A stretch of DNA of 64,000 nucleotides from Eutreptiella sp. 'Long Island Sound 2002' (GCA_964036045.1 OZ038379.1:52452001-52516000), one strand, 5' to 3'. Counted from the stretch's first letter, positions 7,870-34,500 are shown. Notes: a model not told the origin generated them from the sequence alone. Made by a program: numbers and translations.

Positions 7870-8329
7870 GCCAAGATTGTCGGATTGTTCATAAAATTCA
7901 TCAAAGGCACAAATTTCGGTACAAACAAAATCAAATTAGCCCACAAATATACAAATACACAAAAAGGGCATCAAATCATCAAAAATGAAGGAGTGGCGAA
8001 ATTTCGCATCTCATGAGTGAAAAAATGTATGAAAAAAGGATATGATATCGGCCAATTTCAAAGGAGTGGCGAAATTTCGCTTCAGTTTTGGAATTTGGCT
8101 GATTTGGGGTTTGAAATTGACTATTTAGAATTGGAACATTGGTATGGTTCAAAAAATGGCTTTTAAAACATAACCTTAAACACTGACCCCCCCCCCTACA
8201 TTTCATACCCTAAAAAACACCCCAGTTCGGCGTAACAAATTCGACTTCTTGAGGGTCACCAGGGCGGGCAATTAAGGCCTCCTAAGTACCTCTACGAAAG
8301 GTGATGAAGCATGATTGCCAGCATGCGAG

Positions 8330-10397
8330 TCAGGGGTACCATCTGGTGCAACAACGGTGACCACATCTGCCCTGTGCCGTTCTGTACCCTTTCTTGAGGG
8401 TGCCAGTGGGGTCAATGGTAGCCGGCCCTCCAAAGAAGGGCAGGATGTCACTATCATCAGCCACTGTTTCATTACCTTGCAGACATTGAAGCATCGTAGC
8501 TTCTACAGATTCTAGTGCATTTACCTGCCGTGAAACCCTCCGTCTTGGGCACAGATCAAAACGTGCACGGGCAGCCAGGTGGCGTGTCATTGCAACGCCT
8601 TGACCCTTTGCCCATTGCTGTAAAGGGGGCAAGTTGTAATGCATTGCCATGCACATGCAAAGAACATGTGTCTCCACAATGTCCTACAAACTATCGCTGA
8701 ACCTCCCACGCAACGAGATGGCACACTGTACAGCAACTTCAACAGGGAAATATGCTCGCAACATAGCGAGAAGACACCACACATTCACCCACTGTGCATG
8801 TGCCTTTTAAGGGGCCAAGGCCCCCGAATCTTGGACATTTGCACATTTGCAAAGTGCTGTACCATGTGCTCGTTAAGGCCCGCTCACTCTTCCAAGGCAC
8901 GGTTGCAGCTCACATGCGCTGCACGCAACTCATCTTGGTGTGAAGCCATGAATCAACGCAATTGCTGTATGCCATATGTGGCACGCTCACTGACCGGCAG
9001 GGCCAGCAAACGGCCATGGTCCAACAACAATGCACACTCAAGCACCCCCCTGGGGTCAATTATTGCCCGCCCCTCCTTGATGCTTGCAAGCAACACATCA
9101 GTTACCGCACGTACCTAAACGCTTGGAAAAGGGGGGGATGTTGTACACTTTTGCCCACGTGAATCAAACTTGACCAACTGCACACCATGCCATGCACCTG
9201 CCACAGTTTGCTCCTTGAACTGCAACCAACCTGGACCCTCCTCCCGAGCCACCTTGTGCAACCGTGCCTGTGGCATATTTGTGGCAGTGGCTGAATGTGC
9301 ACCAGTGGGCGTGCGCAGTTGTGCCACATTGTCAAAACACCAAATGCCATGCAGGATGTCCCCATAAACCACCCCCCATGCAAGCAAACTGGCATCATGG
9401 CAGTCCTCCCACACATCCGCCTCTTTGGTGGAATGTTGCACCTTCAAATCCAAGTGCCTTGCCACCCAGGGGACCTTAGCCAAAAAAGCAGTGTTCCGCC
9501 GTGCATTTGCCTGTGACCACCTGATGCGATGACTTGTGGGGATGAGTTGGAAACCACTACATTTATCATGCACATGGTCTTGCACACACTTTTGCAACTC
9601 CTTCCATTGCCGTGCCCCATTGTACAAGGCCCGTTGGCGATCCACAGCTGCCATGTAATCGGCATGGGTTGGGCCAGCAGCCTCCAATGCATGACCTAGC
9701 TTGCGCTGCAACACATGCAGGGCGCACCCAAGGGGGGTCACCAGGACCAACCACGTCCCAATCAGGGCAAACACATTGTTCTTAATGGTAGAGACATCAA
9801 CAACTTGCCGTGCACTGGCACCCCGCACACCAAGGTTAGAAGCCCCGTCCACTGCAAAAGTCACCATCCTCTTCGCCCATCAATCGCGGTCCGGATTCCA
9901 TGACAGCAAGACACATTCCAGCTACTTTGTATTCTCCTGTGCATCACCACACGCCACATCAACCATACCAAGGAACACTTCACACATGCCTCCTGGGCCA
10001 GTCCCAGGGACACAAGCAGAGGGGCATACTCATTGATGCGATGCCTTTGCCTGTCCGAGCCGTCAAGCAACAGTGCAATGAAGGTTGCCAGGTATAGGAT
10101 GTGTGTTACATCGTCTTGCATGGCATCATGCATTGCTGCAATAGCCTTCTCAACTATCCATTGCCGTGAAGCATGGTGCCCATAGGTAGATGTCAAAGAG
10201 CAATGAAGAAGAATCCGCTCACTTATGGCACGGATGGAAGTGCACATGCGTAACCCAATATAAACCTCAACCAACCGTGACAAAATGGCTGCCTCAACAT
10301 CAGTCAATGACACACCAATGTCCATTGCCTGCCCCCTGATGAATACAATGTTCCATCCCACCACTTTAGCTTCGTCTGTGGCAGTAGTGGGGCACAA
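8330..10397 (-). pseudogene. hAT-family transposase (ZNF862-like), frameshifted
   Basis: ATFIALLLDGSD (first D), VTFAVDGASNLG (second D), GCALH (CxxH), RIRW, and a C-terminal dimerisation-like segment ...MAMHYNLP. The catalytic E region is degenerate. Confidence 0.88.
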
Positions 10398-10433
10398 TGC
10401 ACAATATCGTCCTGCACAATGCTGCCTGAAACT

Positions 10434-10940
10434 CTACTCGGCCAGTTGGTGGTGGTGCCCTGGCGTGTGCAGATTCCTTGGTGATGATGTTGTGCCACGT
10501 GACAACCCCAAGTGGCTTTCCAACACTTCCTTGGGCCATGTTTTTGGGCTAGAGGTCTTCATGCGCATTCCTTGACCGTGTGTTCCCAGTACCATGGCAT
10601 TACTGGCCCGAGGGGGACGTGCCACCCCAGGAATGCCACACGCATTAGCCCATGCACAACATACACACTCAACATCCCCGCATGTTGTAAACCGACACTG
10701 CCAATGAGCGTCCACGAATGCTTGTAGTGTCTTCGTACCACTATCCGGTTGCATGGGAGGAGCCTGCATCAACATGCACAACACATCCCTCCATGCTGCA
10801 GCCAATGCAATGGAGCGCATCTTGTCTTGCTCCACCGACTGTGCCACTGACGTTTGTGACATACCATGCTCCGCATGCCGCCCAGCCCACTCTTTTGCAT
10901 ACCGTGCTCTAAGTTGTATCTGGTGTGCCCAAACACGCAC
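10434..10940 (-). pseudogene. Region N-terminal to hAT transposase with Cys/Trp zinc-finger-like motif
   Basis: HWQCRFTTCGDVECVCCAWA, positioned where BED/TTF fingers precede hAT catalytic domains. Confidence 0.4.
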
Positions 10941-11099
10941 TTACAAATGCCTCGCCACTCGCACCTGGCGCTTCTGCAACAACTGTGCCACTGCCTCAAC
11001 AAAATCTGATGAGGGCTGATTCGCACCAACGGACGTGATGTCCTGCTGGTTACTACAAACATGAGGTAGCGGCACCAAGGCAGCTACAGACATGTCAAG

Positions 11100-11360
11100 A
11101 GGCATGTTGTGGGCATGCGTATTCATGTTCCTGTCCCCAACCCTTGATGCACCCTGTGTTGCATGTGGGGGGGGGGGGGGGCAATGCACCTTGTGACAGC
11201 GCCATGGCTGACAAAGAGGTGTCAGCAGGCATGCTCCGAGGATGTGTATTCATGTTCCTGTCTCCAACCCTTGATGCACCCTGTGTTGCATGTGGGGGGG
11301 GGGGGGGACAATGCACCTAGTGACAGCGCCATGGCTGAGAGAGAGGTGGCAGTAGGCATG
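11100..11360. repeat. Tandem duplication, ~127-bp period, 2 copies
   Basis: ATTCATGTTCCTGTC...TGCACCCTGTGTTGCATGTG(G)n...GACAGCGCCATGGCTGA at 11121 and 11248. Confidence 0.85.
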
Positions 11361-11459
11361 CTCTGGGCATCCCCTTTGTTGCCAAGGGCTGAAGCCCTTG
11401 TTCGTTGGGAGGCAGACTGTGACATGTCTGGTACCAACGGATTGGTTGGCTTGCGCTTG

Positions 11460-12330
11460 TAGAACAAGCCTGTTGCTTTCCCCGGAATGGCAGGTGGGCT
11501 CGTGCCCTTCACTGTGGTATCATCACACAGCCACCACTTGTCCTCAAAAACAATATACACCACAAAGTGACCCTCATTCTTGCTCACTCCAATGTGCGGT
11601 ACCATGGCATGCAAAGACCATTGCCATCCCAAAATATACACAAACTCATGGTCCACAACAAATTTGTAGCCTTGTTGGTTGTGGATATGTAACCCCACGA
11701 CTTCATTGAACACAGAGGATGTCACCAGCGGTGCCTCTGCCAGATCACCCCCACAAGCAGAAGGGGGGGGGGGTGTTGGCCAGGCCAACACCCCGACCCC
11801 TCATTCCCTCATTCACACGGTTTTGCACACTTTGCCCTGGATTCGTCACATGCAGCACCTGTGGTGTCATGCCCGTCTCCCCCCCCTCCCGTAGAACCTT
11901 CACACTACACTCCCCACAGCATGGGCATATTTGCTCATAAGACAGGCAACATGACAAATCCACTACCCCAGCGGCCGTCAGCTTGGCCACGATGTGTTTC
12001 CGACATTCTGGCATCTCTGCTAGCTGCTTCTACTGGAAAATTGGTGTAGGGGCTTTGCACTTGCAATGCCCACTGCACCAGCACACGGTGACACACATAC
12101 CACCCTATCGGGCCAACCTTTCAGCAATGGCCTGCGGATTGTACACACCGCTTCCCACATGCGCCAGAACATCCTGCCACAATATCCCCCATACACCCCC
12201 ATCATCAAGGCATTGTGGGTGTTGTCCTCCATGTCCACCGGACACAACTAGTAGGCATTGCAGTGTTGTACCAAGCCAACACCAGTTGTAGCCTGGTGGA
12301 TTCTCTATGCCCCATGACCGCCGCGGTGCT
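11460..12330 (-). pseudogene. Ubiquitin-specific protease (peptidase C19/USP)-like domain
   Basis: Cys box GIENPPGYNWCWLGTTLQCL (~12250-12312), internal CPCC, and His box WSLHAMVPHIGVSKNEGHFVVYIVFEDKWWLCDDTTV. Confidence 0.8.
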
Positions 12331-12399
12331 CCTCCAAGTGGCCCACTATGCACCTGCATGTGAGCGGGCTGCAGCCTCGTGGAGGAATGCATGGTCCCA

Positions 12400-12800
12400 T
12401 GATGGGAGTGTCCGCCAGTCACCACGACAGTATAACACCCCAAGCCGCCTCTTCCCATGCCATGAACAAGTGGCATGCAATGCACCCAGACGTACCACAA
12501 CCGGTTGCTGTGATACATCATATGTTGCACCATCCCGTGTAACGCCATCCAAACATTGAATATTGCATCTCCGTCCACCTTGACCACTACACACACCACC
12601 TCCCTCCACCCATATGTGCCCCCGTGTGTGCTGTCCTGTGGAGAACACTGCCGCCCAAGGGGATGAGTCATGCAAGTGGTGATGCGGTTTGTAAGCACAT
12701 TGCAAGAGAACTGCATGGTAGTCCATGTGAACCATTTGGGCAACAACCCCCTTGCAATTTGGTTCACCAAGGTCACCAGTGGCTTGTAGTTCCGCGTTTG
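12400..12800 (-). pseudogene. 2OG-Fe(II) dioxygenase-like domain (TET/JBP/AlkB-type double-stranded beta helix)
   Basis: WFTWTTMQFSCNV..KPHHHLHDSSPWAAVFSTGQHTRGHIWVEGG ... GALHATCSWHGKRRLGVLY, across a frameshift. Confidence 0.6.
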
Positions 12801-12826
12801 TTGCACTAGACTAGTGTGACCGAAGT

Positions 12827-14107
12827 CTATTGCAGAAGCCACACCCTAAACCCCCCAATTGGCCCAGTCCTGTATGGGAACATGCTCATCATCCGATGCA
12901 ATGTGCAAAAGGGGGCTACCTGCAGTGAGTGATTGAAGAATGCTCCCCGGAAATGGCCACCGCTCTCATAACCATCACGTTCCGCCTGAGCAATAACCAC
13001 CACAGTCGCCCTTTTGCAATGCTCCTCCATACCTCCACGCCCATGGACACACAGTGGAGCCTCACGTCTAGGCACCCAAACACTAGCTGACGTGAACGCA
13101 CTGCCCATCCCAAATGATGATGCCACAATGTTGTATGTGTTTGTTCGCAATGGCACCACACCACCACTCACATGCTTTGCCAAACTAGCAAAGAGCTCGG
13201 GTAGACAGCCTTGGGGTCGGGCACCCCATAGCCCCCTCTCAGGATCCCTGTTCACTGTTAGTGCAGACTCCTCATCTAAAAGGCCACACATTTCACGATA
13301 TACCACAATGACTTTTGCCCGGAGCGATGTGTCTGCCAAGGGGCCGTCACTACCAATTGCATGCATGCTTTGGGCCACGGAATAGAAGAAACAAGGTGCT
13401 GCAACAAACTGGTCTGGTAAAAGGCGTAACTTCAAAGACCTGACGGTTGACAGGTCCTGGTTTTGATTCTGCTTGATGGGCTTCCGTTGCACAGTGGCCA
13501 ATGGAGCATCACAATCCACAGGGCCTGTCTTTGTGCCTGGTTCTATCGTGGCACATTTCAAGGGAGGAGTTGCCCCTGCATTACTCGGAGGTGTAATCCC
13601 TGGCCGCTTTCTCCTCATGGGGCTCTGTTCCAAGCAAGTTGGGTTCTCAACTTGCGCAGTGACAGAATCACTACTGGAGTGACTACATGCCCTCACCGTT
13701 GCCACAGTGCCTGTGCGGCAAGGACTACAGTCCATAGCAATTTGCTCCTTAGGTCGCTTTGCAAGTGGTACAGGGCAGTCCTCCAAGCAACTTGCCACCT
13801 GTCCATCACTGGCTGCTGGTGTCAGACGTGCAGTGTCCACCACTGCAGGGGGGGCAAGGGACTGTGGCGTGAGAACCCCTGTTGGGCTGACCATAGATGC
13901 AATGCACAGTGACTCACCTGTGGGGCAATCCTGGGGCCTGTGGACTGCTGCTCCATGCCCTTGCGTTGTGGCAGAGGCCGTGGAGTCATTTAGAGAACCT
14001 CTGGGGGGGCCTTGTGGACTGAGCACCCCGCCAGGGGCCAGCACACCATGGCTACCCATACTACGTACACCTGCTGAGGGAACATGCCCCTGTGTGGAGG
14101 AAGACAA
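12827..14107 (-). pseudogene. 426-aa ORF: low-complexity N-part plus OTU-like cysteine protease domain
   Basis: APCFFYSVAQSM...LRAKV (Cys motif) and ESGGHFRGAF (His motif) in the last ~190 aa. Confidence 0.55.
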
Positions 14108-14161
14108 GGTGGGGTCGTTGGACTCACCGCTTGGGTGGTCATGTGCGTTGAGGACTGGTGC

Positions 14162-15702
14162 TCAATGCCCCTGCGCTACGGCAGAGGATGTGGAGTCATT
14201 GGGGTCACCTCTTGGGTGCCTTTGTGGAGTTAGGTGTTGTGTGTATGCTCGACGCACACCGGCCTCCTCCATGAGAGCCACCAATTCATTCAGCATCACG
14301 AGACCCCCATCATCCCTCCATGGATTGTCAATAACCCGCACTGCTGCATGCAGACGTCCAGGGGGATTTTTTGGTACCTTTGGGCCGAAAGGGGTGGAAC
14401 GCATCAACAGGTCAGTGCAATCCTACATGGGTACCGCAGGCTATTTGCGAAGTGGTGCCCTAGTGTGTACACTGCCACTAGGCTGTCCTCACTCAATGGT
14501 TCGTTGTGTTGCTCTTGTCGCCCTTGGAATGCAATAATTAGACGACATGCAACCCCATGGGCGGCCTGCATCAAAGCTTGGTCGAAGCGTTGTTGCCGTG
14601 TCAAGGCGACATGGTCTTGTGGCACAAGTTGCACATGCGCTGGTGGGGCCCGTGGGACCCGGCAACAGGTCACTGACAAGTGGTTTGGGCCCACTTGTTG
14701 CTTGCGGCCACACAAATGGGCCCAATGGGTGCCCAACTCTCCTAACCAAGAGCTCATAGAAAAGCCCCATTAAGGGGTGGGTCACGCCCTGTCCAGAACA
14801 GCCACTCTTCCACTAAAGGTAGTGCACGCACCAATGAGCACCACACTGCCTTTTGGTCTGCCGGCTTCACACTGCTTGGCCACCCCCCGAGTGCTGCCTC
14901 GCGGCCACCAGCCTTACCGGTCTGCCATAGCCTCAGCCGCTCCCACATTGCTGTAGCAACCGCACGATCGTACACAGAGTTGCCCCCATCATGCAAGGGG
15001 TGTATGGAAAACCCATACTTGGTGTACATGAACCGACACAGTGCCCTGGCACCATTGTGATCCACCATATCCAGATCAGATGCTCCCATGCGGCTCCTCA
15101 ACCGCCTCCAGAGGTCCGCTGCCACATGATGTGTGGATTCCCATCCCAATTGTCCACTGGCCAAAAGTAGGCCATATTTCATTCTTCCGGGCTCCAATAA
15201 GTTTTCCGGCGGCCACTCACCAGGCAGGTCCATTGCAGGGCTTGTGCACCACCACCGTTAGTGGTCTTGGTGCCTGTCGTGGCTTGCAAGGTCCGCAACC
15301 TTGACCACTATGGGGCTCCCACAACCTAGGCGGGCAATCAAGCGCACGGCCCTGGTACTCAAAGTGCCAGACCACCTTTGCCTCAGGCTAAGCAACTGGT
15401 CCAGGGGTTGCCACTGCTGATGAGTTTTTGTAAGTGGCGCTATGGCTCTGACCACAAACAGAATTCTACAATTCAGTGGAACGCAGTGGTTGGGACAAGG
15501 TTCGGTCGCTTAGCGCAAGGGCTTGGAACAAAACCAACTGTTGTGGCTCAGTGGCACACAATAATGACTCGAGTTGCAAGGGGACTGTAGCGGGTGGGAC
15601 AACGTTCGGTCGCCCAGCGCAAGGGCTTGGACGAGAACCAGCTGTTGCGGCTCGGTGACATACAGTAATGTACGTAGTGGCAATGAGGCCAGCTGACTTC
15701 AT
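14162..15702 (-). pseudogene. Frameshifted coding fragments of giant hAT body, unknown domains
   Basis: Minus ORFs 15466-15702, 15258-15455, 14754-15233, 14404-14785 and 14162-14407. Internal ~105-bp (15490-15670) and ~210-bp (13950-14230) duplications. Confidence 0.4.
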
Positions 15703-15830
15703 AGGCCTACAACACTAGGGTTGAGGCCACACAACGCAGACCTACATCTCAAAGGGTGTAGTGAGGCAAAAGAATTTGCAAGGAGGAATGGCATAGATGC
15801 ATCAATAAAATGGGCAAACACGTTCTACAC

Positions 15831-18800
15831 TTGTCTAGAGGGCACGCGATTATTCCTAACGGGGTGGAGACCCTCCTATGAATCATCGCGTGGGCACGCG
15901 GTGATTCCTAAGGGGGTGTAGACCCCCCTATGAAGAATCGCGCGGGATCGCCGTGCTTCACACAGGGGTGTGGACCCCCCTATGAATCATCGCGTGGGCA
16001 CACGATGATTCCCCAGGGGGTGTAGACCCTCATAGGAATCATGCCGCGGGCACGCGATGATTACTGCGGGGGTGTAGACCCCCCTATAATTCATTGTGTG
16101 GGCCCTATACTAGCCTGGAGGGCACGCGATGATTCCTAACAGGGTGTAGACCCCCCTATGAATCATCGCGTCGGTACGCGATGATTCCTACGGGGGTGTA
16201 AAGCCCGCTATGTATCATCGCGTGGGCACGCGATGATTCCTCAGGGGGTGAATACCCTCCTAGGAATCATCGCCTGGGCACGGGATGATTCCTAAGGGAG
16301 CGGAGACCCTCCTATGAATCATCGCGTGGGCACGCGATGATTCCTAAGGGGCTTTCGACCCTCCTATGAGCCATCGCGTGGGGACATTCCTAAGAAGGTG
16401 TAGACCCACGTAAGAATCATCGTGGGGGCACGTGATGATTCATAGAGGGGTGTAGACCCCCCTATGAGTAATCGCGTGGACCCAATACTAGTCTAGAGTG
16501 CACGCGATGATGCCTAACAGGGTGTAAACCCCCCTAAGAATTATCGCATGGGCACGCGATGATTCTTAAGGGGTGAAGACCCTCCTGGGGATCATTCAAT
16601 GGGGAGGTGATGACTCCTACGGGGGTGTAGACCCTCCTAGGAAACATCGCCTGGGCACGCGAGGGGGTGTAGAACCTCCTAGGTATCATGGCGTGGGCAC
16701 GCGATGATTGCTAAGGGGGTGAAGACCCTCCTATGAACATCGCGTGGGCACGCGGTTATTCCTAAGGGGGTGTAGACCCTCCTATGAATCACGCGTGGGC
16801 ACCCGATGATTCCTAAGGGGGTGTAGACACCCGTAAGAATCGTCGTGTGGGCAGGCGGTGATTCGTCGAGGGGTGTAGACCCCCGTAAGAATCATCCCGT
16901 GGGCACGTGATGACTTCTAAGGGGGTAAAGACCCTCCTAGGAATCATCGCATGAGCACGCGGTGATTCCTGAAGGGGTGTAGACCCTCCTAGGAATCATC
17001 GCCCGGGCACGCGATGAGTCCTAAAGGGGTGTAGATCATCCTAGGAATCATCGCGTGGGCACGCGATGATTCATAAGGGGGTGTAGACCATCCTATGAGT
17101 CATCGTGTGGGCCCTGAACTGGTATAGAGGGCACGCGATGATTCCTAACAGGGTGTACAGCCGCCTATGAATCATCAGACGGGCACGCGATGAGTCCTAA
17201 GGGGGTGTAGACCCCGCTATGAATGATCGTGTGGGCAAGCGATGATTCCTAAGGGGGTGAAACCCCTCCTAGGAATCATCGCCTGGGCACGGGATGATTC
17301 CTAAGGGGGTGTAGACCCTCCTATGAATCATCGCGTGGGCACGCGATGATTCCTAAGGGGCTTTTGACCCTCCTATGAACCATCGCGTGGGGACATTCCT
17401 AAGAAGGTGTAGACCCATGTAAGAATCATCGTGGGGGCACGTGATGATTCATAGAGGGGTGTAGACCCCCCTATGAGTAATCGCGTGGACCCTATACTAG
17501 TCTAGAGTGCACGCGATGATGCCTAACAGGGTGTAAGCCCCCCTAAGAATTATCGCATGGGCACGCGATGATTCTTAAGGGGTGAAGACCCTCCTGGGAA
17601 TCATCGCATGGGGAGGTGATGACTCCTACGGGGGTGTAGACCCTCCTAGGAAACATCGCCTGGGCACGCGAGGGGGTGTAGAACCTCCTAGGTATCATGG
17701 CGTGGGCACGCGATGATTGCTAAGGGGGTGAAGACCCTCCTATGAACATCGCGTGGGCACGCGGTGATTCCTAAGGGGGTGTAGACCCTCCTATGAATCA
17801 CGCGTGGGCATCCGATGATTCCTAAGGGGGTGTAGACACCCGTAAGAATCGTCGTGTGGGCAGGCGGTGATTCGTAGAGGGGTGTAGACCCCCGTAAGAA
17901 TCATCCCGTGGGCACGTGATGACTTCTAAGGGGGTAAAGACCCTCCTAGGAATCATCGCATGAGCACGCGGTGATTCCTGAAAGGGGTGTAGACCCTCCT
18001 AGGAATCATCGCCCGGGCACGCGATGAGTCCTAAAGGGGTGTAGATCATCCTAGGAATCATTGCGTGGGCACGCGATGATTCATAAGGGGGTGTAGACCA
18101 TCCTATGAGTCATCGTGTGGGCCCTGAACTGGTATAGAGGGCACGCGATGATTCCTAACAGGGTGTAGACCCGCCTATGAATCATCACGCGGGCACGGGA
18201 TGAGTCCTAAGGGGGTGTAGACCCCGCTATGAATGATCGTGTGGGCAAGCGATGATTCCTAAGGGGGTGAAACCCCTCCTAGGAATCATCGCGTGGGCAC
18301 GCGATGATTCCTAAGGGGGTGTAGACCCTCCTAGAAATCATCGTGTGGGCACGTGACAATTCAAGGAGGGGTGTAGACCCTCCTAGAAATCGTTGCGTGG
18401 GCACGCGATGATTCCTAAGGGCGTGTAGACCCCCTACGAATCATCGTGCGGGCACGCGATGATTCCTAAGGGGGTGTGGACCCTCCGGTGAATCATAACG
18501 GGGGCACTTGATGGTCCCTAAGAGCGTGTAGACCCTCCAATTATTCATCACGGGGCGCGGGATGATTCTAACAGGGCTGGAGATCCCCCTAAGAATCTTC
18601 CCGTGGGCACGCGATGATTCGTAGAGGGGTGTAGCCCCTCCTAGGAATCGTCGCGTGGGCACGCGATGATTCACAAAGGGGTGTAGACCCGCCTACGAAT
18701 CATCACGGGGGCACGCCATTGTTCCTAAAGGGCCATAGACCCTCCTATGAATCATCGCGTGGGCATACAACGATTCCTAAGGGGGTGTAGACCCTCCTAG

Positions 18801-21800: not shown

Positions 21801-24800
21801 CTCCTAGGAATCATTGCGTGGGCAAGCGGTGATACACACAGGGGTGTAGACCCTCCTAGGAATCATTGCGTGGGCACGCGATGATTCCTAAGGGGTCATA
21901 GACCCTCGAATGAATCATCGCGGGGGCACTGGATGATTCATAGAGGGATGTAGACCCTTCTAGGGATCATCGCGTGGGCACGCCATGTTTCCTACGGGGG
22001 TGTAGAACCTCCTAGGAATCATCACGTGGGCACGCCATGTTTCCTAAGGGTGTGTAGACCCTCCAATGAATCATCGCGGGGGCACCGAATGATTCATAGA
22101 GGGATGTAGACCCTTCTAGGGATCATCGCGTGGGCACGCCATGTTTCCTAAGGGGGTGTAGACCCTCCTAGGAATCATCATGTGGGCACACCATGTTTCC
22201 TAAGGGGGTGTAGACCCTCCCGGGGGCAGGGGATGATTCATAGAGGGCTGTATATCCCCCTAGGATTCTTGCCGTGCGCACGCGATGATTCATAGAGGGG
22301 TGTAGACCCTCCTAGGAATCATCACATGGGCACGTCAAAGTTCCTCGGGGGATGTAGACCCTCCTATGAATCATCGTGTGGGCACACCATGATTCCTAAG
22401 GTGGTGTAGACCCTCCTGGGAATCAACGTGTGGACACGCGATGATTCACATAGGGGTGTAGACCCTCCTAGGAATCATCGCGTGGGCAAGCGATGATACA
22501 CACAGGGGTGTAGACCCTCCTAGGAATCATTGCGTGGGCACGCGATGATTCCTAAGGGGGTATAGACCCTCGAATGAAGCATCGCGGGGGCAACGGATGA
22601 TTCATAGAGGGATGTAGACCCTTCTAGGGATCATTGCGTGGGCACGCCATGTTTCCTAAGGGGGTGTAGACCCTCCTAGGAATCATCACGTGGGCACGCC
22701 ATGTTTCCTAAGGGTGTGTAGACCCACCAATGAATCATCGCGGGGGCACCGGATGATTCATAGAGGGATGTAGACCCTTCTAGGGATCATCGCGTGGGCA
22801 CGCCATGTTTCCTAAGGGGGTGTAGACCCTCCTAGGAATCATCACGTGGGCACACCATGTTTCCTAAGGGGGTGTAGACCCTCCCGGGGGCAGGGGATGA
22901 TTCATAGAGGGCTGTATATCCCCCTAGGATTCTTGCCGTGCGCACGCGATGATTCATAGAGGGGTGTAGACCCTCCTAGGAATCATCACATGGGCACGCC
23001 AAAGTTCCTCAGGGGATGTAGACCCTCCTATGAATCATCGTGTGGGCACACAATGATTCCTAAGGGGGTGTAGAGCCTCCTGGGAATCAACGTGTGGACA
23101 CGCGATGATTCCTAGAGCGGTGTAGACCCTCCTATGAATCTTCAGGTGGGCACGCGATGATTCACACAGGGGTGTAGACCCTCCTAGGAATCATTGCGTG
23201 GGCACACGATGATTCCTAAAGGGGTATAGACCCTCAAACGAATCATCGCGGGGGCACGGGATGGTTCATAGAGGGATGTAGACCCTTCTAGGGATCATCG
23301 CGTGGGCACGCCATGTTTCCTAAGGGGGTGTAGACCCTCCTAGGAATCATCACGTGGGCACGCCATGTTTCCTAAGGGTGTGTAGACCCTCCAATGAATC
23401 ATCGCGGGGGCACTGGATGATTCATAGAGGGCTGTAGATCCCCCTAGGAATCTTGCCGTGCGCACGCGATGATTCATAGAGGGGTGTAGACCCTCCTAGG
23501 AATCATCGCCTAGGCACGCGATTATTCACAAAGGGGTGTACACCATCCTAGAAATCATCACATGGGCACGCCATAGACCCTCCTATGAATCATGGGGTGG
23601 GCACACGATAATTCGGAAAGGGGTGTAGACCCTCCCAGGAATCATCGCCTAGGCACGCGATGATTCATGGAGGGGTGTGGCCCTACTAGGAACCATCGCG
23701 TGGGCACCCGATGATGCACAGAGGGGTGTAGACCCTCCTAGGAATCATCGCGTGGATGATTCCCAAGTGGGTGTAGACCCTCCTAAGAATCATCGCCTGG
23801 GCACGCGATGTTTCCTAAAGGGATGTAGACCTTCCTAGGAATCATCACGTGGGCACGCCATGTTTCCTAACGGGGTGTAGACCCCCCTCTGAGTCATCGC
23901 GTGGGCACGCATTGATTCCGAATGGGGTGTAGACCCTCCAATGAAAAATCTCGGGGGCACAGGATGACTCATAGAGGGCTGTAGATTCCCCTAGAAATCT
24001 TCCCGTGAGCACAGAGGGGTGTAGACCGTCCTAGGAATCATCACGTGGGCACGCCATAGTTCCTAAGAGGGTGTAGACCCTCCTAGGAATCATCACGTGG
24101 GCACGCAATGATTCATTGAGGGATGTACACCCTCCTACAAATCATCGAGTGGGCACTCCATGATTCCCAAGGGGGTAGACCCGCCAATGAATCATCGCGG
24201 GGGCAGTGGAGGATTCATAGAGGGATGTAGACCCTCCTAGGAATCATCGCGTGGAGACACGAGGATTGGCGGAGGGGTGTAGACCCTCCTACGAATCATC
24301 GCGTGGGCACGTGATGATTCCTAAGGGGGTTTAGACCCTCCTAGCAATCATCGCGTGGGCAAGCGATGATTCAGAGAGGGGTGTAGACCCTCCTAGGAAT
24401 CATCGCGTGGGCACCGGATGATTCATAGAGGGATGTAGACCCTTCTAGGGATCATCGCGTGGGCACGCCATGTTTCCTAAGGGTGTGCAGACCCTCCAAT
24501 GAATCATCGCGGGGGCACTGGATGATTCATAGAGGGCTGTAGATCCCCCTAGGAATCTTGCCGTGCTCACGCGATGATTCATAGAGGGGTGTAGACCCTC
24601 CTAGGAACCATCGCCTAGGCATGCGATGATTCACAAAGGGGTAGAGACCATCCTAGGAATCATCACATGGGCACGCCATAGTTCCCGAGGGGATGTAGGC
24701 CCTCCTATGAATCATGGGGTGGGCACACGATAATTCGGAAAGGGGTGTAGACCCTCGTAGGAATCATCGCCTAGGCACGCGATGATTCATGGAGGGGTGT

Positions 24801-27632
24801 GGCCCTACTAGGAATCATCGCGTGGGCACCTGATGATGCACAGAGGGGTGTAGACCCTCCTAGGAATCATCGCGTGGATGAATCCCAAGTGGGTGTAGAC
24901 CCTCCTAAGAATCATCGCCTGGGCACGCGATGTTTCCTAAAGGGATGTAGACCCTCCTAGGAATCATCACGTGGGCACGCCATATTTCCTAACGGGGTGT
25001 AGACCCCCCTATGAGTCATCGCGTGGGCACACGATGATTCCGAATGGGGTGTAGACCCTGCAATGAATAATCTCGGGGGCACAGGATGACTCATAGAGGG
25101 CTGTAGATTCCACTAGAAATCTTCCCGTGAGCACAGAGGGGTGTAGACCCTCCTGGGAATCATCACGTGGGCACGCGATGATTCTTTGAGGGGTGTAGAC
25201 CCTCCTACAAATCATCGCGTGGGCACGCGATGATTCACGGAGGGGTGTAGACCCTCCTACAAATCATCGAGTGGGCACTCCATGATTCCCAAGGGGGTAG
25301 ACCCGCCAATGAATCATCGCGGGGGCAGTGGAGGATTCATAGAGGGATGTAGACCCTCCTAGGAATCATCGCGTGGACACGCGAGGATTGCCGGAGGGGT
25401 GTAGACCCTCCTGCGAATCATCACGTGGGCACGCGATGATTCCTAAGGGGGTGTAGACCCTCCTATGAATCATCGCGGGGGCACGGGATGATTCATAGAG
25501 GGCTGTAGATCCCCCTAGGAATCTTCCCGTGGGGCACGCGATGATTCATAGAGGGGTGTAGACCCTCCTAGCAATCATCGCCTGGGCAGGCGATGATTCA
25601 GAGAGGGGTGTAGACCCTCCTAGGAATCATCACGTGGGCACCGCATGATTCATAGAGGGATGTAGACCCTTCTAGGGATCATCGCGTGGGCACGCCATGT
25701 TTCCTAAGGGGGTGTAGACCCTCCTAGGAATCATCACATGGGCACGCCATGTTTCCTAAGGGGGTGTAGACCCCCCTATGAGTCATCGCGCGGGCACGCG
25801 ATGAGTCCTAAGGGGGTGTAGACCCTCTAATGAATCATCGCGGGGGCACGGGATGATTGATAGAGGGCTGTAGATCCACCTAGGAATCTTCCCGTCGGCA
25901 CGCGATGATTCATAGAGGGGTGTAGACTCTCCTAGGAATCATCGATTGGGCAGACCATAGTTCCTGAGGGGATGTAGACCCTCCTATGAATCATCGCGTG
26001 GGCACGCGATGATTCACAGAGGGGTGTGTAGACCCTCCTAGGCATCATCGTGTGGGCACAAGATGATTCTTAGATGGGGGTAGGCCCTACTAGGAATCAT
26101 TGCGTGGGTACGCGATGATTCCCAAGGGGGTGTAGACCCTCAAATGAATCATCGCGGGGGGCACAAGACGATTCATAGAGGGATGTAGACCCTCCTAGCA
26201 ATCATCACGTGGGCACGCCATGTTTCCTGAGGGGGTGTAGAGCCCCCGATGAGTCATGGCGTGGGCACGCGATGATTCCTAAGGGGGTTTAGACCCTCCA
26301 ATGAATCATCGCGAGGGACGGGATGATTCATAGAGGGCTGTAGATCCCCCTAGGAATCTTCCCGTGGAGCACCCGATGATTCCTAGAGGGGTGTAGACCT
26401 CTCCTAGGACTCATTGCCTGGGCATGCGATGATTCAAAGAGGGGAGTAGACCGTCCTAGGAATCATCACGTGGGCACGCCATAGTTCCTAAGGGGGTGTA
26501 GACTCTCCCATGAATCATCGCGTGGGCACGCGATGATTCCTAAGGGGGTTTGGACACTCCTAGGAATCATCGTGTGGGCACGCGTGGATTCATAGAGGGG
26601 TGTAGACCCTCCTTGGACTTATCGCGGGGGCACCCGATGATTCACAAAGGGGTGTAGACCCTCCTAGGAATCATCGTGTGGGCATGCGGTGATTCCAAAG
26701 GGGGTGTATACCCTCCAATGAATCGTCGCGGGGGCACGCGAGGATTCGTATAGGGATGTAGACCCTCCTAGGAATCATCATGTGGGCACACCATGTTTCG
26801 TAAGGGGGGGTAGAACCTCCTAGGAATCATCGCGTGGGCACGCGATGATTCCGAAGGGGGTGTAGACACTCGTATCAATCATCGCGCGGGGGTTCACATG
26901 GGGGTGTGGACTGTCCTAAGAATCATCACGTGGGCACGCCATAGTTCCTAAGGGGCTGTAGACTCTCGTATGAATCATCGCGTGGGCACGCGATGATTCC
27001 TAAGGGGGTGTAGACCCTCCTAGGAATAATGGCGTGGGCACGTGATGATTCATAGAGGGGGTGTAGACCCTGCTATGGATCATCCCGTGGGCACGCGATG
27101 ATTCATAGAGGGGGTGTAGACCGTCCTATGAATCATCCCCTGGGCACGGGACGATTGCGAAGGGGGTGTCCACCCTCCTATCAATCATCGCATGGGCACG
27201 GAATGATGCATAGAGGGGTGTAGACCTCTCTAGGAATCATCGCGTGGGCACGCGATGATTCCTAAGGGGGTGTAAACCCCCCTCTGAATCGTCGCGTAGG
27301 CACGCGACGATTCATGAGGGGATGTAGACCGTCCTAGGAATCATGGCGTGGGCTAGCGGTGACTCCGAAGGGGGTGCAGACCCGCCCATGAATCATGGCG
27401 TGGGCACGCCATGATGCCTAAGGGGGTGTAGACCCTCCTAGCAATAATCGCCTGGGCACGCGATGACTCCTAAGGGGGTGTAGACCGCCCTATGAATCAT
27501 CGCGTGGGCACGCGATGATTCCTAAGGGGGTGTAGACCCTCCTAGAATCATTTCGTGCGTCATATAGTAGTCTGGGGGGGGCACGCGATGATTCCCAGGG
27601 CAGTGCAGACCAATCACGTGGGTCCTATACTA
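15831..27632. repeat. 11.8 kb tandem array of a 52-bp palindromic monomer (~225 copies) bounded by MITE-like TAG...CTA ends
   Basis: Consensus GGGCACGCGATGATTCCTAAGGGGGTGTAGACCCTCCTAGGAATCATCGCGT. Flanks TTCTACAC (15823-15830) and GTCTACAC (27633-27640) match 7/8. Confidence 0.95.
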
Positions 27633-28560
27633 GTCTACACCCCATGTGGACCAACCACGGGCTGCCACGGCTTCTTGAACTAACAAACAAAGAATGTGAT
27701 GCAAATCAGAATGATGAAGAATGGAAGGGCTGCACAAGGGCGTCTCTGACCCTTCCTCGTCCAGCTTTTCCCCAGGTGCGGTCTCAAAGGCTGCTGCATA
27801 TGTGTATCCCATCCCACATGAAAGAGCTCTCAAGGCACAGAGGCAAAGATGGAAGAGGTCACAGGTCGACAGTCACACGTTTGTACCCTTTCCAAATGGT
27901 GTTGTGCGTGGTAGTGCTGCGAGGTCATGGGGTATATAGGTCAAGGGTCCAAGGTCTTAGGTCACAAGCCATAGGTCAATGCATGATCGTGTAAAGACAG
28001 GGTTAGGCAACATGCACGCCTGGCGCCATGCCTAGGATTGCATGCAAAGCATGCCGCCTCCAAGGGTGAGCTTAGTGGCGCTCCAGAACGTAATCCTTCA
28101 CAGGACGGGGCAGCTTGCGCCACCCACAGTGGGCATCAACCCGCACATGTAGGGGCATCCATGCACACTCCCCAAGGGTCCCAAGGCACTGGTCAACCCC
28201 GTGCAGGAGGGATGCCACATACACCCCAAGAGGGGTGCAAAAGTCCCCCTTCAGGAACCCCAGGGAATCTAGATAGCTGCACGCGTCCTGCCACAGAGGC
28301 AGGTCGATGGTGCGGTACGACCCTACCGTGTCCTTATCAATGTACTTCTACTTTGCTTGTAGGGGCTTGGCCACTAGGTGGTGCACCAGTCTGACCTCCC
28401 ATTGTTGCAGACATGTTGTGTGGGCCACGCTTTCCATCCCGCACCAGCCCCCAACAACTTGTCCATCAAGCCCCATAATGGAGCAGGGCCCGGTCAGTGA
28501 AGTCAGGGAGGGTGACCCCCAAAGGGATGGGTGTAACAATGTTCCCCAGCGGATCTCTGA

Positions 28561-30629
28561 CTAGCACCGCCACTTCCGATTTCCGAGTGTTGGCCATGAT
28601 GCGCTCAAAGGCAAGCAACTGGTCAGCATAGCCGGGTGCATACCCCCAGGGGTCATATGCCCTCTTGCTCTTCTTCCAAGGCTTCCATAGCCAGTGCCCC
28701 ACCACACACACCCCAACCAGTAGATTGTGCCCTCTTTAACCCTATCAATGACTCCAGACTCCCTCAATACCCTTGCCACCTCAAAGGTGGTGCCCACAGT
28801 GGCTGAGCCTGTTTCCCACTGGACAACGCTCAGTGCAGCTATCCGTGCACCAGGGGTGGGGTGCTGAGCCCACGCCGCGAATCTCCCGAAAAGGTGGAGC
28901 TCAAACTGTGCCCTGCTGGTTAGTGTGTTTGCCCTCCCGATGTCGTTCATGATCCCTGGAGTGGGAGACACCAGGGAGGCCAAGATTGCTCGGGCTTGCA
29001 GCCCTTGGAAGCGATCCAGGGTAGCAATCGCCAAGACGATAGGGGTCGAGGTATTCGACATCTTCCTACAGACATACCGCACACACGATTTGAGGCACAC
29101 CATTTGGGCATACTGTGTAGTCACTATCACCACCGACCTATCTGGGTAAGTACCTTTCCTGACAACCACCTCGAAGAAATGGCACACCAGCAGTCCCTCC
29201 TCCATGCTCATGTTCCCACGTCCAACCAACACATTATCCATCCCCATGCTGTGCCATGCCTCCGCCACATAACTGTGCATTCTCCGTACGTCCGCGTTCC
29301 CCAAAGTTTCCCCCGTTTGGTGCCACCACTTGTCCCCATCTAGGTCCACAATGCGGATGGGGTTGTGCAAGACTGGGTCATGGAGGGGGTGGAGAGATGA
29401 GTGGTAATAACCAAGTCCCCACCCCCTGTGAACAAGGCACACATGATTGTAGCCAGTGGCATGTTCATCTAGTACTGTTGTACGAAGACGCTGGCACGGC
29501 ACCGCATGCGGTACAAAAAGAATTGCAAGGTGCAAGTGGTGCAGAACCGTTATGAATCATGGCAGTGCACATGGGGCCGGGTGATTGCATATCCACATTG
29601 TTGTATGTGAACGTCTGCTCCGTTGGGCACGGAACATCCTTGGCCTTTGGATTACCTCTACAAGCGGAAGCCAAAAGGTGGACGGGGTTGTAGGGCCGCA
29701 AGTGACCAGGCAGACATTGGCTGCCCATGGCTGGCAAGTCCCATCCCACTAGGATGTTATGCCCGGACGCCTCGTCCAAAAAGCTCAAGGCAAACCTAGT
29801 TTGTGGCCTCCCTGGTGCAGCCCCAAGAAGCAGCCTGTGCCGGTTAGCAACCATCCTAGCCGTGGCAAACACCACACGGCGGCTGATAAGCGCACATGTC
29901 ATGGTAGGCTTCCAACCTGGGGTGTTCCCCACAGTTTCCTGCCCCTTGTTCTGGTCAAGCGACTGCAGCGCAGGTATGGCTGCAGCCTGTTGGGCACGTA
30001 GTCGCAACCGGGATGCAGGATGGTCGCCAAGCACCATCTCGCGCACCACAGGTTGAGCATAACACTCGTCATGCACCTGTGACAGCAAGTTGTCCACGTG
30101 TGCATTGGTGGGTGTAGTCACCAGCACACATGACAGTGGGGAGGGCGGGGTTATCTGCCTCAAGACCACCCACGCTCCTGCCCTAATTGATGGTGCTAAG
30201 GTCAGCAGGATCTGGGTTTTGGGTAACAATGTACCCCAGCTGCCATAGCACGGCTTTGGTGCATGCCACCGGGGTCTCTAACTTCCCTATCCCAGCACCT
30301 TCAGTCAGTGCTGTGATGCATGACTTGTCCAGTATCTGACACACAGCAAACACCTGTGAGGGGTTCAAGCAGTGGCGTTTGACAAGGTGTTGAAAGATCT
30401 CTTGGTCTTGGTTTGACAAAGGAGGCGGGTCCCTTGGTTGGGCCCGAATGTTTGCCACCTTTTTGGACCATGCTAACCCTTGCCGGATCTCGTTGCGCAA
30501 GTTCCGAAAGTCAACCGTGTCAGGGATAACCTGGCACCAGTACTTGGCATTCAGATAGGCTCTTGGCTTATTTGCACTACTCATCCACACGTAGTCCCCA
30601 GAGATGCGATCACCATGCACCCTTGGCAA
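28561..30629 (-). pseudogene. Upf1/DNA2-like superfamily-1 helicase, frameshifted
   Basis: LNPSQVFAV (Q), EGAGIGK (degenerate Walker A), TTPTNAHVDNLL (Ia), FLDEAS (II), TLDRFQGLQA (V), RANTLTSRA (VI), all in correct order. Confidence 0.88.
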
Positions 30630-30849
30630 AGTCTGGTCTCAAGGTGTCCCAAGGTCGGTCAGCGACCTAGCCGTGCACCATGTCACCATCACCGAACTCA
30701 TAGTTGCCCCATACCTCCATTTCGGCGGCCCAGTGCGGCTGTTGGAGAACATTCGCATTCCCATCACCGTCATCATCAGGCAACCATTTCTCAAAGGCCA
30801 GGTGCCTGCACGCGCCGTTCTTTTGTGGCCACACCTCAGCGGCCTCCAT

Positions 30850-31668
30850 CTAATGGACAGTGTACACCTCAGATGTCTTGGCCGCGAACTCGTCGCGGTC
30901 AAGCCATCGTTTTGTAAACGCTGCCACGAGGTTGTCATCCGGCCCATATTCTAGGATGTTCAATGTGGCAGCAGGGTGCAAGGATGTTGGGTGCTGTGGG
31001 AGTTGGAAAGATGGCTGCGGCTGAGGAGCACGCGTTGGTTGTGATGAGGGTTGCCCACCTTGTGGCGCACCAGTCGGCCGGCGACAGGGCCGGGGCAGGG
31101 GTGGACTGTTGCGGCTCAGAGGCACGCATTGGTTGTGGTTTGGGTTGAGCACCATGTGGCACGCCGAGTAAGCCGGCGCTAGGCCCGGGACAAGGGTGGA
31201 CGGCTGTGGGTCAGGGGCACACAGTGGTTGTAATGAGGGTTGAGCACCCTGTGGCGCGCCCGAGTCAACCGGCGCCAGGGCCGAGATAGGGGCGGGTGGC
31301 TGCGGCTCAGGGGCACGCAGTGGTTGTGGTTGTGCAAAGGGTTGATGTAGATGTTGAGGTGGTGGGACCATGACGAAATCCACACACCCCGGTATTGGCT
31401 TGGGCATTGGCTTTGGCTTTGGATTTGGACCACCATATCTGGGGGGGTTGTCGGACCCATGGCTGGGACCACGTTCCGTCCACGGAGGGTGTAGTGGGCA
31501 AGAAACAACTGTCGAGTATAGAAAAGCATGGAAGAGTGGCATGGGGGCATGGTGGACAGCAATAGATGGTCCCTGTGCACTTCGACCTTTCCCAGCCCTT
31601 GGGGAAAACACACATGTGGGTGCCTCAAGGGTCGGCATCATAGTCAGAGAGGCAACATACGCTTGCAA
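30850..31668 (-). pseudogene. Pro/Gln-rich repetitive ORF upstream of helicase
   Basis: 272 aa with ~30-aa repeats QPQPLRAPEPQPPAPISALAPVDSGAPQGA, same strand as and abutting the helicase fragments. Confidence 0.45.
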
Positions 31669-33419: not shown

Positions 33420-33472
33420 AAAGTCTGATGTCTGATGTCTCATAGCCGGCTAAGTGGCTATACACAATCCTG
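33420..33472. repeat. Right subterminal repeats plus TIR of giant hAT
   Basis: AAAGTCTGATGTCTGATGTCT, then TATACACAATCCTG. Confidence 0.9.
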
Positions 33473-34500
33473 GTGTGGTTGTCCACAACCACTTGCACCC
33501 CTAGTCTCCCTCGAAGGAGGCTTAGCCCCCCGTTGTTGCGCAACATACGCTTGAGCCTCCGGTGACTCCCCTCCATGGCAAAGCAGGAGATCTTTGACAA
33601 GATTCTCCACTTCTTTGCAAAAAAAAGTACAGGTGGTCGGTCCAAAGATGCGTCCACAGAAGTTTGCCCCACTGGAGCTCATTGTGGGTAGTGCCCATGG
33701 CTGTGCTATGTCTCCGGAGCCGCCCCAAGTCGGCTCCCGAGAACGGGCACGGACCCGAGAAAAATTGGAGTCAGAGGGCCGAGGACGGCTTTTGCCTAGT
33801 GCGGACAACAAAGATCGACCGCAATTGCTGGGCAGCTGGGCCGGCAGTGCGGTTGTCGGCTGCGGTGATTGTAGCCGCAATCTACGACGGCCATCTTGAC
33901 CGGCAAAAGAAGCGGTCTCGCTATTTGTCCATTGACCGCGCCCGGACCTGCCACTACACGGCTGACATGGACATTAGCCGCCTCGCCCTAGCCCCCCATA
34001 TTGACACCACCCCTCTCTCCACCACCATCTATCCGGACACCAGCACGCCCTCTTTATCCACCGATTGGAAGTCCTCCTCCCACGCCACAGCTTTCCTTGA
34101 CTCCAATCTCGGTGACCTTGAAAGCCCTGCAAGAGGCATGGATGTCCACCGCCGTGCCACCACCATCTTCCCCACGATCCCCCAAGTCTGTACCCAAAGA
34201 CCGCCCCGACCCCGGGCCCTACAGCGCCAAGACACTGCAAATGTTCCGGGACAACCACGGCGGGGGGGGTCCATATTTTGTAGATGGGGTGTTGCTACCG
34301 AGCCATGCATGTGCACCTGCGGCCAGCATGTGGGCCCTGGCCAGACTGAGAACTGGGCCTAGTGTAATGCATGTGACTGCTGGATCCATGATGGTTGCTT
34401 TGGGCTCGATTGGGGGCGTGATGGCCCCTACATGCAGCAGAGCAACAGCCGGTGGCAATTTTCTATGTGTGCGCCCAGGTCCGATGACGACTCGGATGCT
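33473..34500 (-). pseudogene. 5' part of RAG1/Transib-like DDE transposase (family 2)
   Basis: WTHLWTDHLYFF/AKKWRILSKISCFAMEGSHRRLK across an A-run frameshift: HxxxxH followed by E exactly 20 residues later, as in RAG1 H937/H942/E962. The upstream limit is approximate. Confidence 0.7.

Follow-up and report, generated by a model that had tools for sequence, protein, structure and literature searches.

An old copy of a giant, probably hAT-like DNA transposon family with three genes in Eutreptiella sp.

Background

Members of the hAT superfamily (Ac, Hermes, Buster/Charlie and the domesticated ZBED5, FAM200 and GTF2IRD2) are typically a few kilobases long and carry a single gene, encoding only a transposase. 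The element described here has in common with them an 8-bp target site duplication (TSD), short terminal inverted repeats (TIRs) of the CAG/CAA...CTG type and a hAT-like order of transposase motifs. It differs in being four to six times larger, in having three genes and in having a transposase with an N-terminal USP-type domain and a C-terminal Cys-rich module; this transposase has diverged beyond the reach of the Pfam hAT models, and no BED finger was found in it.

Three groups of cargo-bearing elements come closest. In the rust-fungus hAT7 elements (PMC12730594), too, the transposase gene is preceded by a dioxygenase-type gene that points the same way, but their TSDs are of 7 bp and a recognisable TET/JBP gene is their whole cargo; the putative dioxygenase here is motif-based and forms part of a longer protein with an OTU-like domain. 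DNA-1_cRei of Chlamydomonas, an 18.4 kb transposon carrying CMD1 (bioRxiv 10.1101/2022.06.16.496473), resembles the ~18 kb element here in its 8-bp TSDs, its TIRs and its several expressed genes, including one for a chromatin- or DNA-modifying enzyme; its TIRs are of 67 bp, its copies very few and its cargo a protein kinase plus TET/JBP, and the accessible part of its description mentions no deubiquitinase, helicase or internal satellite. Helitrons and Helentrons with OTU and VTD domains combine, as predicted here, papain-fold deubiquitinase domains with an SF1 helicase, and their deubiquitinases have been proposed to protect transposition proteins from ubiquitin-dependent degradation (PMC9741609). 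Those elements move by the rolling-circle route, have a Rep/Pif1-type helicase and lack both TIRs and TSDs; the present element is of the TIR/DDE type, with an Upf1-like helicase and one predicted deubiquitinase of the USP class. In the literature, no element was found that combines a USP-fused transposase with genes for a helicase and a second, protease-like protein and with an internal satellite.

Results and discussion

Limits and copies of the element

The window, that is, the whole 64,000-nucleotide stretch of Eutreptiella sp. 'Long Island Sound 2002' that was analysed (GCA_964036045.1 OZ038379.1:52452001-52516000), contains a minus-strand element extending from 740 to 33472, with TIRs and a TSD at both ends. 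The 5' TIR (33459-33472) reads CAGGATTGTGTATA on the minus strand and the 3' TIR (740-753, minus strand) corresponds to CGGGATTGTGTATA on the plus strand; the two 14-bp repeats match at 13 of 14 bases. The 3' endpoint is homologous in the related copies L002, L003 and L004, with flanks that diverge beyond it. Directly outside both TIRs lies a perfect 8-bp TSD (732-739 and 33473-33480), GTGTGGTT on the plus strand and AACCACAC on the minus strand. Next to the 3' TIR, a non-coding subterminal stretch containing ATCAGAC repeats (754-1191, minus strand) is homologous to the 3' parts of L002, L003 and L004; the 5' subterminal region (31675-33458, minus strand), with its many C/G homopolymer runs, shows patchy homology to L002 (666-2083). 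The initial annotation had put the ends of the element at 8330 and 31668; these are ORF ends, and that interval leaves out the Cys-rich C-terminus at 1192-1679, which lies past a nested insert.

A second complete copy in the same assembly (ctg9783; 17,840 bp) is younger, has matching 14-bp TIRs and a perfect 8-bp TSD (GGCGGCAC), and agrees with the window copy in its domains and their order. The refuting condition named at the first inspection, TIR-bounded copies without these domains, is therefore not borne out. TIR sequences of the family (CAGGATTGTGTATA, CAAGTATGTGTATA and CAGCTATGTGTATA, each 14 bp) follow the pattern CAG/CAA.. TGTGTATA. The window, L002, L003, L004/L006 and L005 share a colinear arrangement of genes, which is also that of the L001 locus, representing a divergent subfamily (synonymous divergence, dS, > 1.4); wherever a fetched copy spans these parts, they follow one another as helicase, satellite, ORF1 and ORF2. 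Related sequences are numerous: 307 transposase-related paralogous ORF fragments were recovered at E ≤ 0.01 and the ORF1 sequence cluster has 173 members at ≥ 90% identity. Intact ORFs exist in the genome for ORF1 (P0237, 1048 aa) and ORF2 (P0259, 1314 aa), and junctions that are frameshifted in some copies are bridged by other paralogous ORFs.

Removal of the two blocks originally regarded as nested inserts leaves 14,414 bp, in line with the ~14.3 kb first estimated. Only one of the blocks is an insert, and it is the only nested insert in this copy: an unrelated 6.6 kb hAT-type element (1680-8285) with a perfect 20-bp TIR (TAGGAGGCCTTAATTGCCCG) and an 8-bp TSD (ATACCTCT/GTACCTCT), which interrupts ORF2. 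L002, L003 and L004 are uninterrupted at the matching point, and a Pfam search with the ORFs of the nested element gave no match. The other block is a 52-bp palindromic satellite detected by TRF (15838-27551; 11.7 kb), rejected as an insert since arrays stand at the same place in L001 to L005. They measure 0.3 kb in L002, 1.7 kb in L004, 2.8 kb in L003, at least 9.2 kb in L005 and, with a 41-bp period, 3.7 kb in L001. Each unit folds into two hairpins, and the hairpin-forming array is always between the helicase gene and ORF1. The satellite is thus a component of the family that has expanded in the window copy.

Overall, 740-33472 probably represents (at a rough probability of 0.8) an old copy, now inactivated, from a family of giant, autonomous cut-and-paste DNA transposons with hundreds of copies, a near-intact length of ~17.8 kb, three genes and a hAT-like transposase. 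Of the giant hAT lineage proposed from the first inspection, the great size, the TIR boundaries and the 8-bp TSDs are borne out; its hAT membership is probable, although no profile search gave a match, and the first interpretation as a whole is partly supported.

Coding capacity

The coding remnants stand on the minus strand in the order first described, although the window copy is decayed, with frameshifts and stops in every gene, ORF2 split by the nested element and the satellite grown to 11.7 kb. Some of the frameshifts coincide with homopolymer runs, where assembly errors are a possible cause. Sequencing runs containing the sequence behave like DNA, and one RNA run gave no match.

The helicase gene begins with Pro-rich tandem repeats on its N-terminal side (30853-31674, minus strand), recognised by translation of a 95-bp tandem repeat and homologous to repeats in L002 and L004. 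The decayed helicase region itself (28537-30638, minus strand; Pfam AAA_12 and tblastn) contains at least three frame changes and four stops. AAA_12 was matched in the window at 28564-29556 (E = 1.3e-8, 35 bits); AAA_11 is faint there and reaches 57 bits in the homologous L004 ORF, and an L001 ORF carries both. A PDB sequence search gave matches to the Aquarius helicase. With both AAA_11 and AAA_12 of the core recognised, the gene is predicted to encode an Upf1-like SF1 helicase.

Upstream of ORF1, a region of short tandem repeats (15183-15837, minus strand; direct repeat 15485-15670) is homologous to L003 (4062-4444), L004 and L005 and may be a promoter. ORF1 comprises an N-terminal domain and Ser/Pro-rich repeat linker (13502-15182; tblastn of P0237 residues 1-690; dN/dS about 0.4), an OTU-like cysteine-protease domain (12830-13501; dN/dS 0.42) and a C-terminal domain that is 2OG-dioxygenase-like by motifs only (12349-12854; tblastn of P0237 residues 880-1048; dN/dS 0.28), all on the minus strand. 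In the OTU-like domain the putative catalytic Cys lies in ..PCFFYSVAQSMHA.. and the His in ..GGHFRGAFF..; both positions (AGAC[FL][FY]YA and GGH[FY]RGA) are kept in the divergent L001 subfamily. Among Atlas language-model neighbours of this piece, 45 of 100 carry OTU (score 0.86); no Pfam or PDB-sequence match was obtained for it from the window, relatives or intact ORFs. The same sources gave no Pfam, PDB-sequence or profile match for the 2OG-like domain, in which the candidate metal motif lacks the canonical HxD and reads PHQHVHD or PHQHRFD (H-x-x-D or HD); it is accompanied by a distal H and an RRLVVLY-type motif. The AlphaFold model of the OTU/2OG part (pLDDT 30.2) was too low for a fold search. 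OTU-like and 2OG-like are accordingly candidate labels, given at the motif level only.

ORF2 (~1500 aa) encodes a predicted USP-type deubiquitinase joined in frame to a divergent DDE transposase of hAT-like character, which is followed by a Cys-rich module; in one copy (P0259) the fusion of USP and transposase is contained in a 1314-aa open frame. The USP-type deubiquitinase occupies 11225-12359 (minus strand), with an ATG at 12359-12357, a Cys-box-like motif ~17 codons later and a His-box at 11225-11800. The His-box matches Pfam UCH (29.6 bits, E = 6.6e-7; curated cut-off 23.9) over profile positions 197-254, and matches above the cut-off were also obtained in L003 and P0259. The Cys-box-like NWCWLGTTLQCL, upstream of the His-box in the window, was read by eye (NWCWLxTTLQCL), and Pfam gave no match on this piece. 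Then come a linker with a 127-bp tandem duplication (10941-11224, array 11115-11363; tblastn of P0259), the decayed transposase core (8288-10940; tblastn of P0259 residues 98-1152; at least three frame changes and at least 11 stops) and, beyond the nested element, the zinc-finger-like Cys-rich module (1192-1679; CATCKQVVRIRCNTCLVCHACF; tblastn of P0259 residues 1151-1314), all on the minus strand. The Cys pattern of this module is kept in the distant relative P0317. Of the Pfam families expected from the initial annotation, then, AAA_11/AAA_12 and UCH were recovered and the OTU, 2OG and hAT models were not.

Alternative readings

That the domains might form one polyprotein, as first suggested, has some appeal, as ORF1 and ORF2 adjoin on the same strand and overlap, and the reading frame of ORF2 has no stop in the ~60 codons that precede the ATG. 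A single product, from OTU (or helicase) through transposase, could then arise by programmed +1 frameshifting, stop read-through or splicing, the last being conceivable given the unconventional introns of euglenids. This is very unlikely. All five copies containing the junction (the window, L003, L004, L005 and the copy encoding P0136) have the ORF1 stop (..HAGA*), and the ORF2 ATG overlaps it in the +1 frame, 11 nt before the stop, inside a 15-mer (CATGCAGGTGCATAG; 12346-12360, minus strand) that is identical in the window, L003, L004 and L005. Neither a slippery sequence nor an intron signal was identified, and helicase and ORF1 are separated by 0.3 to 11.7 kb of satellite. The predicted co-occurrence of the domains holds in other copies, but as three separate genes (helicase, ORF1 and ORF2), in which only USP and transposase are truly fused.

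The affinity of the transposase bears on a different possibility, namely that it belongs to another DDE superfamily with 8-bp TSDs (Zisupton/KDZ-like or P-like) or to an undescribed one, its motifs being convergent or those of a deeper clade. Pfam at E ≤ 1 on P0016, P0009, P0259, P0198 and P0317 gave no hAT RNase-H or Dimer_Tnp_hAT (PF05699) match, a PDB search with family profiles recovered no hAT chain, Hermes included, and of the hAT TIR consensus 5'-YARNG only the first three bases fit, the fifth being A or T rather than G; KDZ elements are, moreover, the classic carriers of TET/JBP genes (PMC12730594). The AlphaFold model of the transposase (pLDDT 48.6) was too low for a fold search. Such an origin is nevertheless unlikely, given that the named Atlas neighbours of two different query pieces are essentially all hAT-derived (FAM200/ZBED5, ZBED1, DUF4371, DUF659 and Dimer_Tnp_hAT; best score 0.90), that 8-bp TSDs (in the two complete copies) and CAG...CTG termini are compatible with hAT, and that the motifs D / VDGASNLG / CH / HRIRWSQA / ER, conserved across relatives at 25 to 30% identity, stand in the order D, D(G)AS(N), C-H, R-W-S, C-terminal E-R, which we take to be that of hAT blocks. 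By TSD, termini, motif order and language-model features the transposase is probably hAT-like. Gene capture is common in DNA transposons, and L002, which has no TSD, keeps both element ends with ORF1 and half of the USP missing; the additional genes could accordingly be host genes captured once and carried without a role in transposition. It is quite improbable that they are such passengers, as ORF1, USP and helicase are kept in subfamilies at dS > 1.4 with dN/dS of 0.15 to 0.4, like the transposase core; USP and transposase form a single in-frame fusion; and no non-transposon paralogs of ORF1 were among the matches. Between subfamilies every coding part has a dN/dS of 0.15 to 0.42, computed from tblastn HSPs, which favour conserved stretches, and bootstrap upper limits are < 0.7 except for one short linker. 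The helicase, the OTU-like/2OG-like ORF and the USP appear to be under purifying selection, travelling with the transposase in every fetched copy spanning them.

Conclusions

In the proposed three-gene transposon, the DDE domain would excise and reinsert the element as hAT enzymes do, and the expression of ORF1 and ORF2 may rely on a single transcript with reinitiation or on mRNAs that are processed separately. Ubiquitin may be removed by the fused USP and the OTU-like protease, either from the transposase or from its partners, which would then be shielded from degradation, or from chromatin at the element; the helicase may help to handle hairpin-prone DNA or the element's RNA. A tentative, rather doubtful extension is that the element carries a kit for anti-silencing and self-protection. 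Its components would be a USP attached to the transposase, an OTU-type protease linked to an oxygenase that modifies nucleic acids or chromatin, and an RNA/DNA helicase; acting jointly, they would clear ubiquitin marks and other repressive signals from the element or safeguard its proteins. On this view the satellite, with its conserved hairpin structure, would not be junk but would have a function in cis, for instance as an array for protein loading or replication pausing.

Ends and size of the element

The transposon copy on the minus strand of the window extends well beyond the limits of 8330-31668 placed on it in the initial annotation. In alignments to paralogous loci fetched from the same assembly (L001-L006), homology continues past 8287, resuming at 1679 and reaching approximately 746, while on the right it extends to approximately 33466. 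The 5' terminal inverted repeat (TIR), which reads CAGGATTGTGTATA on the minus strand, lies at 33472-33459 and its inverted partner, matching in 13 of 14 bases, forms the 3' end at 753-740. These are flanked by a perfect 8-bp target-site duplication (TSD; AACCACAC on the minus strand, 732-739 and 33473-33480 in plus coordinates), and the element is therefore 32,733 bp long. It was comparison with paralogous loci that revealed the true ends, as an 11-mer seed search for TIRs around the former limits (6000-9500 against 30500-34500) gave only chance pairs. The 3' termini of L002, L003 and L004 fall at the homologous base (...TATACACATAGCTG), beyond which the flanking DNA differs. L004 and L006, when joined, make up a complete young copy of 17,840 bp (ctg9783:36405-54244), whose TIRs are CAAGTATGTGTATA and CAGCTATGTGTATA and whose 8-bp duplication (GGCGGCAC) is again perfect. 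That two independent copies should both be bounded precisely by such duplications cannot be due to chance.

Just outside the element, window positions 1-139 and 33980-34307 match elsewhere in L001 and L002 (76-80% and 67-69% identity) and probably represent further interspersed repeat families.

One nested element and a satellite array

Two blocks within the element had been annotated as nested inserts, of which only that at 1680-8285 is genuine. It is an unrelated hAT-type element of 6.6 kb inside ORF2, with a perfect 20-bp TIR (TAGGAGGCCTTAATTGCCCG); the two 8-bp TSD copies differ by one mismatch (ATACCTCT/GTACCTCT), and other copies are uninterrupted at this site. None of its ORFs matched Pfam, so it cannot serve as a canonical hAT reference, and it probably either lacks autonomy or has diverged very far.

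The other block, a satellite of 11.7 kb and 52-bp period at 15838-27551, divides the broken coding remnants found at 8330-31668 on the minus strand. Every copy spanning the interval between helicase and ORF1 carries an array there, which rules out a nested insertion. Arrays of the same period occupy 0.3 kb in L002, 1.7 kb in L004 (4034-5693), 2.8 kb in L003 (939-3775) and at least 9.2 kb in L005 (162-9320); in the divergent L001 the array has a 41-bp period and spans 3.7 kb (766-4440). In three copies the array ends 275-293 bp from the start of homology on the ORF1 side. The satellite is an integral part of the family and has grown longer in the window copy. Subtraction of both blocks leaves 14,414 bp, in agreement with the earlier estimate of about 14.3 kb.

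Units of the window and L003 types share the 52-bp period and a G-run/C-run core, and their arm sequences are unrelated. Each nevertheless forms one small hairpin and one perfect hairpin of 15 bp, at matching positions. Position and two-hairpin architecture are kept across copies, with the long-arm sequence wholly different between subfamilies. It looks as if structure rather than sequence has been preserved, or as if the array has repeatedly been replaced by different palindromic units.

Three coding units rather than one polyprotein

When single pieces of the window were searched against Pfam (E up to 10 allowed), there were just three matches. UCH was recognised by its C-terminal, His-box part at 11225-11800, with a score above the curated cut-off (E 6.6e-7); at 28564-29556 an SF1 helicase was represented by its AAA_12 half (E 1.3e-8), adjoined by a faint AAA_11 match. 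Pro-rich repeats at 30853-31674 were confirmed by repeat finding and translation. The supposed hAT, OTU and dioxygenase pieces gave nothing in Pfam or PDB-sequence searches.

The layout is clearer in paralogs. ORF1 of an intact copy encodes a complete protein of 1048 aa (P0237), ending in HAGA followed by a stop. Its unassigned N-terminal domain is followed by Ser/Pro-rich repeats, then by an OTU-like region (residues 690-885) with conserved Cys (AGACFYYAVAQSLH) and His (GGGHFRGAVF), and finally by a C-terminal 2OG-like part (residues 886-1048) with PHQHVHD, a distal His and RRLVVLY. P0259 (1314 aa) represents ORF2 without its first ~190 residues and contains, in order, the USP His-box (Pfam UCH), a linker, a Cys-rich patch, the transposase (residues 520-1085) and a C-terminal CxxC...CxxCxxC module. 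The linker of the window copy contains a 127-bp tandem duplication (11115-11363; two copies, 93% identical), and related repeats occur in L002-L005.

A single polyprotein of cargo and transposase, as initially suggested, finds no support at the junction between ORF1 and ORF2. The ORF1 stop overlaps the ORF2 ATG in a 15-mer, CATGCAGGTGCATAG, which is identical in the window (12346-12360), L003, L004 and L005. This ATG lies approximately 17 codons upstream of a USP Cys-box-like motif, NWCWLGTTLQCL. Within the USP region, frameshifts occur at G or C homopolymer runs at a different place in each copy (window 11700-12100, L003 8000-8100, L005 13600-13700), and long-read assembly may have introduced some of them in error. 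Because other paralog ORFs run through junctions at which L003 or the window is frameshifted, and because the frameshift sites differ between copies, the ancestral ORF2 was continuous from the ATG preceding the Cys-box-like motif. Helicase, ORF1 and ORF2 are thus separate coding units, with fusion limited to USP and transposase; that frameshifting or splicing joins ORF1 to ORF2 at their junction is conceivable but less likely. Independent insertion of the domains is ruled out by colinear gene order across subfamilies.

The OTU-like and 2OG-like regions had no profile or PDB match. The divergent L001 subfamily retains the Cys and His of the OTU-like region, and the ESM Atlas gave an OTU lead. 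The metal motif of the 2OG-like part departs from the canonical HxD. Both labels are hypotheses, that of a dioxygenase being the weaker.

Selection on the cargo and decay of the window copy

In codon alignments built from tblastn HSPs, intact ORFs served as references for comparison with the window copy and with L001 (dS up to 2.8). All domains of ORF1 and ORF2 had dN/dS of 0.15-0.42, and the helicase 0.16-0.49; the choice of HSPs pushes these ratios downward. Bootstrap intervals were well below 1. Even with that bias, the cargo has clearly been kept together with the transposase through old splits between subfamilies.

Judged from its sequence, the window copy itself is dead, because all of its genes carry frame changes and stops: at least three and five, respectively, in ORF1, at least five and 12 in ORF2 (which also holds the nested insertion), and at least three and four in the helicase. 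Sequencing runs containing the window sequence behave like genomic DNA, and one small RNA run had no match to the window.

Affiliation of the transposase

The 8-bp duplications fit hAT, and the termini are of the form CAG...CTG. Within the transposase, LLDGSD, VDGASNLG, PCHV, SHRIRWSQA and LLRTYCP..VERA are conserved in hAT order, and are retained even in relatives of just 25-30% identity, such as P0317. We take these blocks to be the hAT D, D, CxxH, RW and E. In the ESM Atlas, two different transposase pieces had only hAT-derived families as named neighbours (best score 0.90). On the other side, Pfam hAT models matched no family member even at E ≤ 1, family profiles reached no PDB hAT chain, and phmmer and profile searches of PDB sequences returned nothing meaningful for the transposase, OTU-like or 2OG-like parts. 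AlphaFold2 models, from alignments mostly of paralogs, had a pLDDT of 48.6 for the transposase and 30.2 for OTU/2OG, too low for a fold search. Taken together, the transposase is hAT-like and is probably a divergent hAT member (probability about 0.7).

Abundance and divergent copies

A 254-aa piece at 9118-9879 has at least 120 paralogs of 55-89% identity in one ENA assembly, and the DNA around several was retrieved as L001-L006. A profile search with alignment A5 gave 307 matches, all paralogs among the 120 listed, and 173 ORF1 sequences fall into one cluster at ≥ 90% identity. Exhaustive HMMER searching with the transposase-family member P0016 found mostly fragments from the same genome and three distant unannotated relatives, which had no Pfam match. 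A distant transposase relative (P0317/P0198/P0318; 25% identity over ~690 aa) lies on ENA contigs of 2.8-3.5 kb. It has the C-terminal Cys-rich module and lacks the USP part; its ORF nearly fills the short contig, and these contigs are possibly transcripts of another organism.

L002 is an internal-deletion derivative (noted at 7628-8193): ORF1 and the USP N-terminus are missing, whereas the two ends are still present, as are the helicase, a short satellite and USP(His-box)-transposase. No TSD flanks it, and (TA)n microsatellite lies on its flanks. In L003 the transposase ORF is disrupted in its C-terminal part by an inversion of ~250 bp (10917-11164) followed by an insertion of ~8.3 kb (11165-19438). 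In L001 (14000-21269), the transposase of the first copy is followed ~6 kb downstream by a second helicase ORF (583 aa, AAA_11 plus AAA_12) and then by the same 41-bp satellite, a layout suggestive of two neighbouring elements that share an orientation.

Cargo-bearing transposons

Cut-and-paste transposons are usually minimal, and those in which selection retains additional enzymes reveal ways in which mobile DNA counters host control or turns it to its own use. There are precedents for deubiquitinases in Helitrons, which carry OTU and VTD domains (PMC9741609), and for dioxygenases in several fungal and algal DNA transposons. hAT7 elements of rust fungi have TET/JBP genes upstream of the transposase (PMC12730594), and Chlamydomonas DNA-1_cRei is an 18.4-kb element with 8-bp TSDs and four genes including the TET/JBP gene CMD1 (bioRxiv 10.1101/2022.06.16.496473). 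Full-text literature searches returned nothing relevant on hAT elements with USP, OTU or helicase cargo, or on Euglena hAT elements. Within the literature searched, no description turned up of a DDE transposase joined to a USP and accompanied by a second protease-like gene, a Upf1-like helicase and a structure-conserved satellite.

Much of the repeat and satellite DNA of this genome can be assigned to one element family. As the family is abundant and some copies have long open frames, the role of ubiquitin removal in transposition is directly testable.
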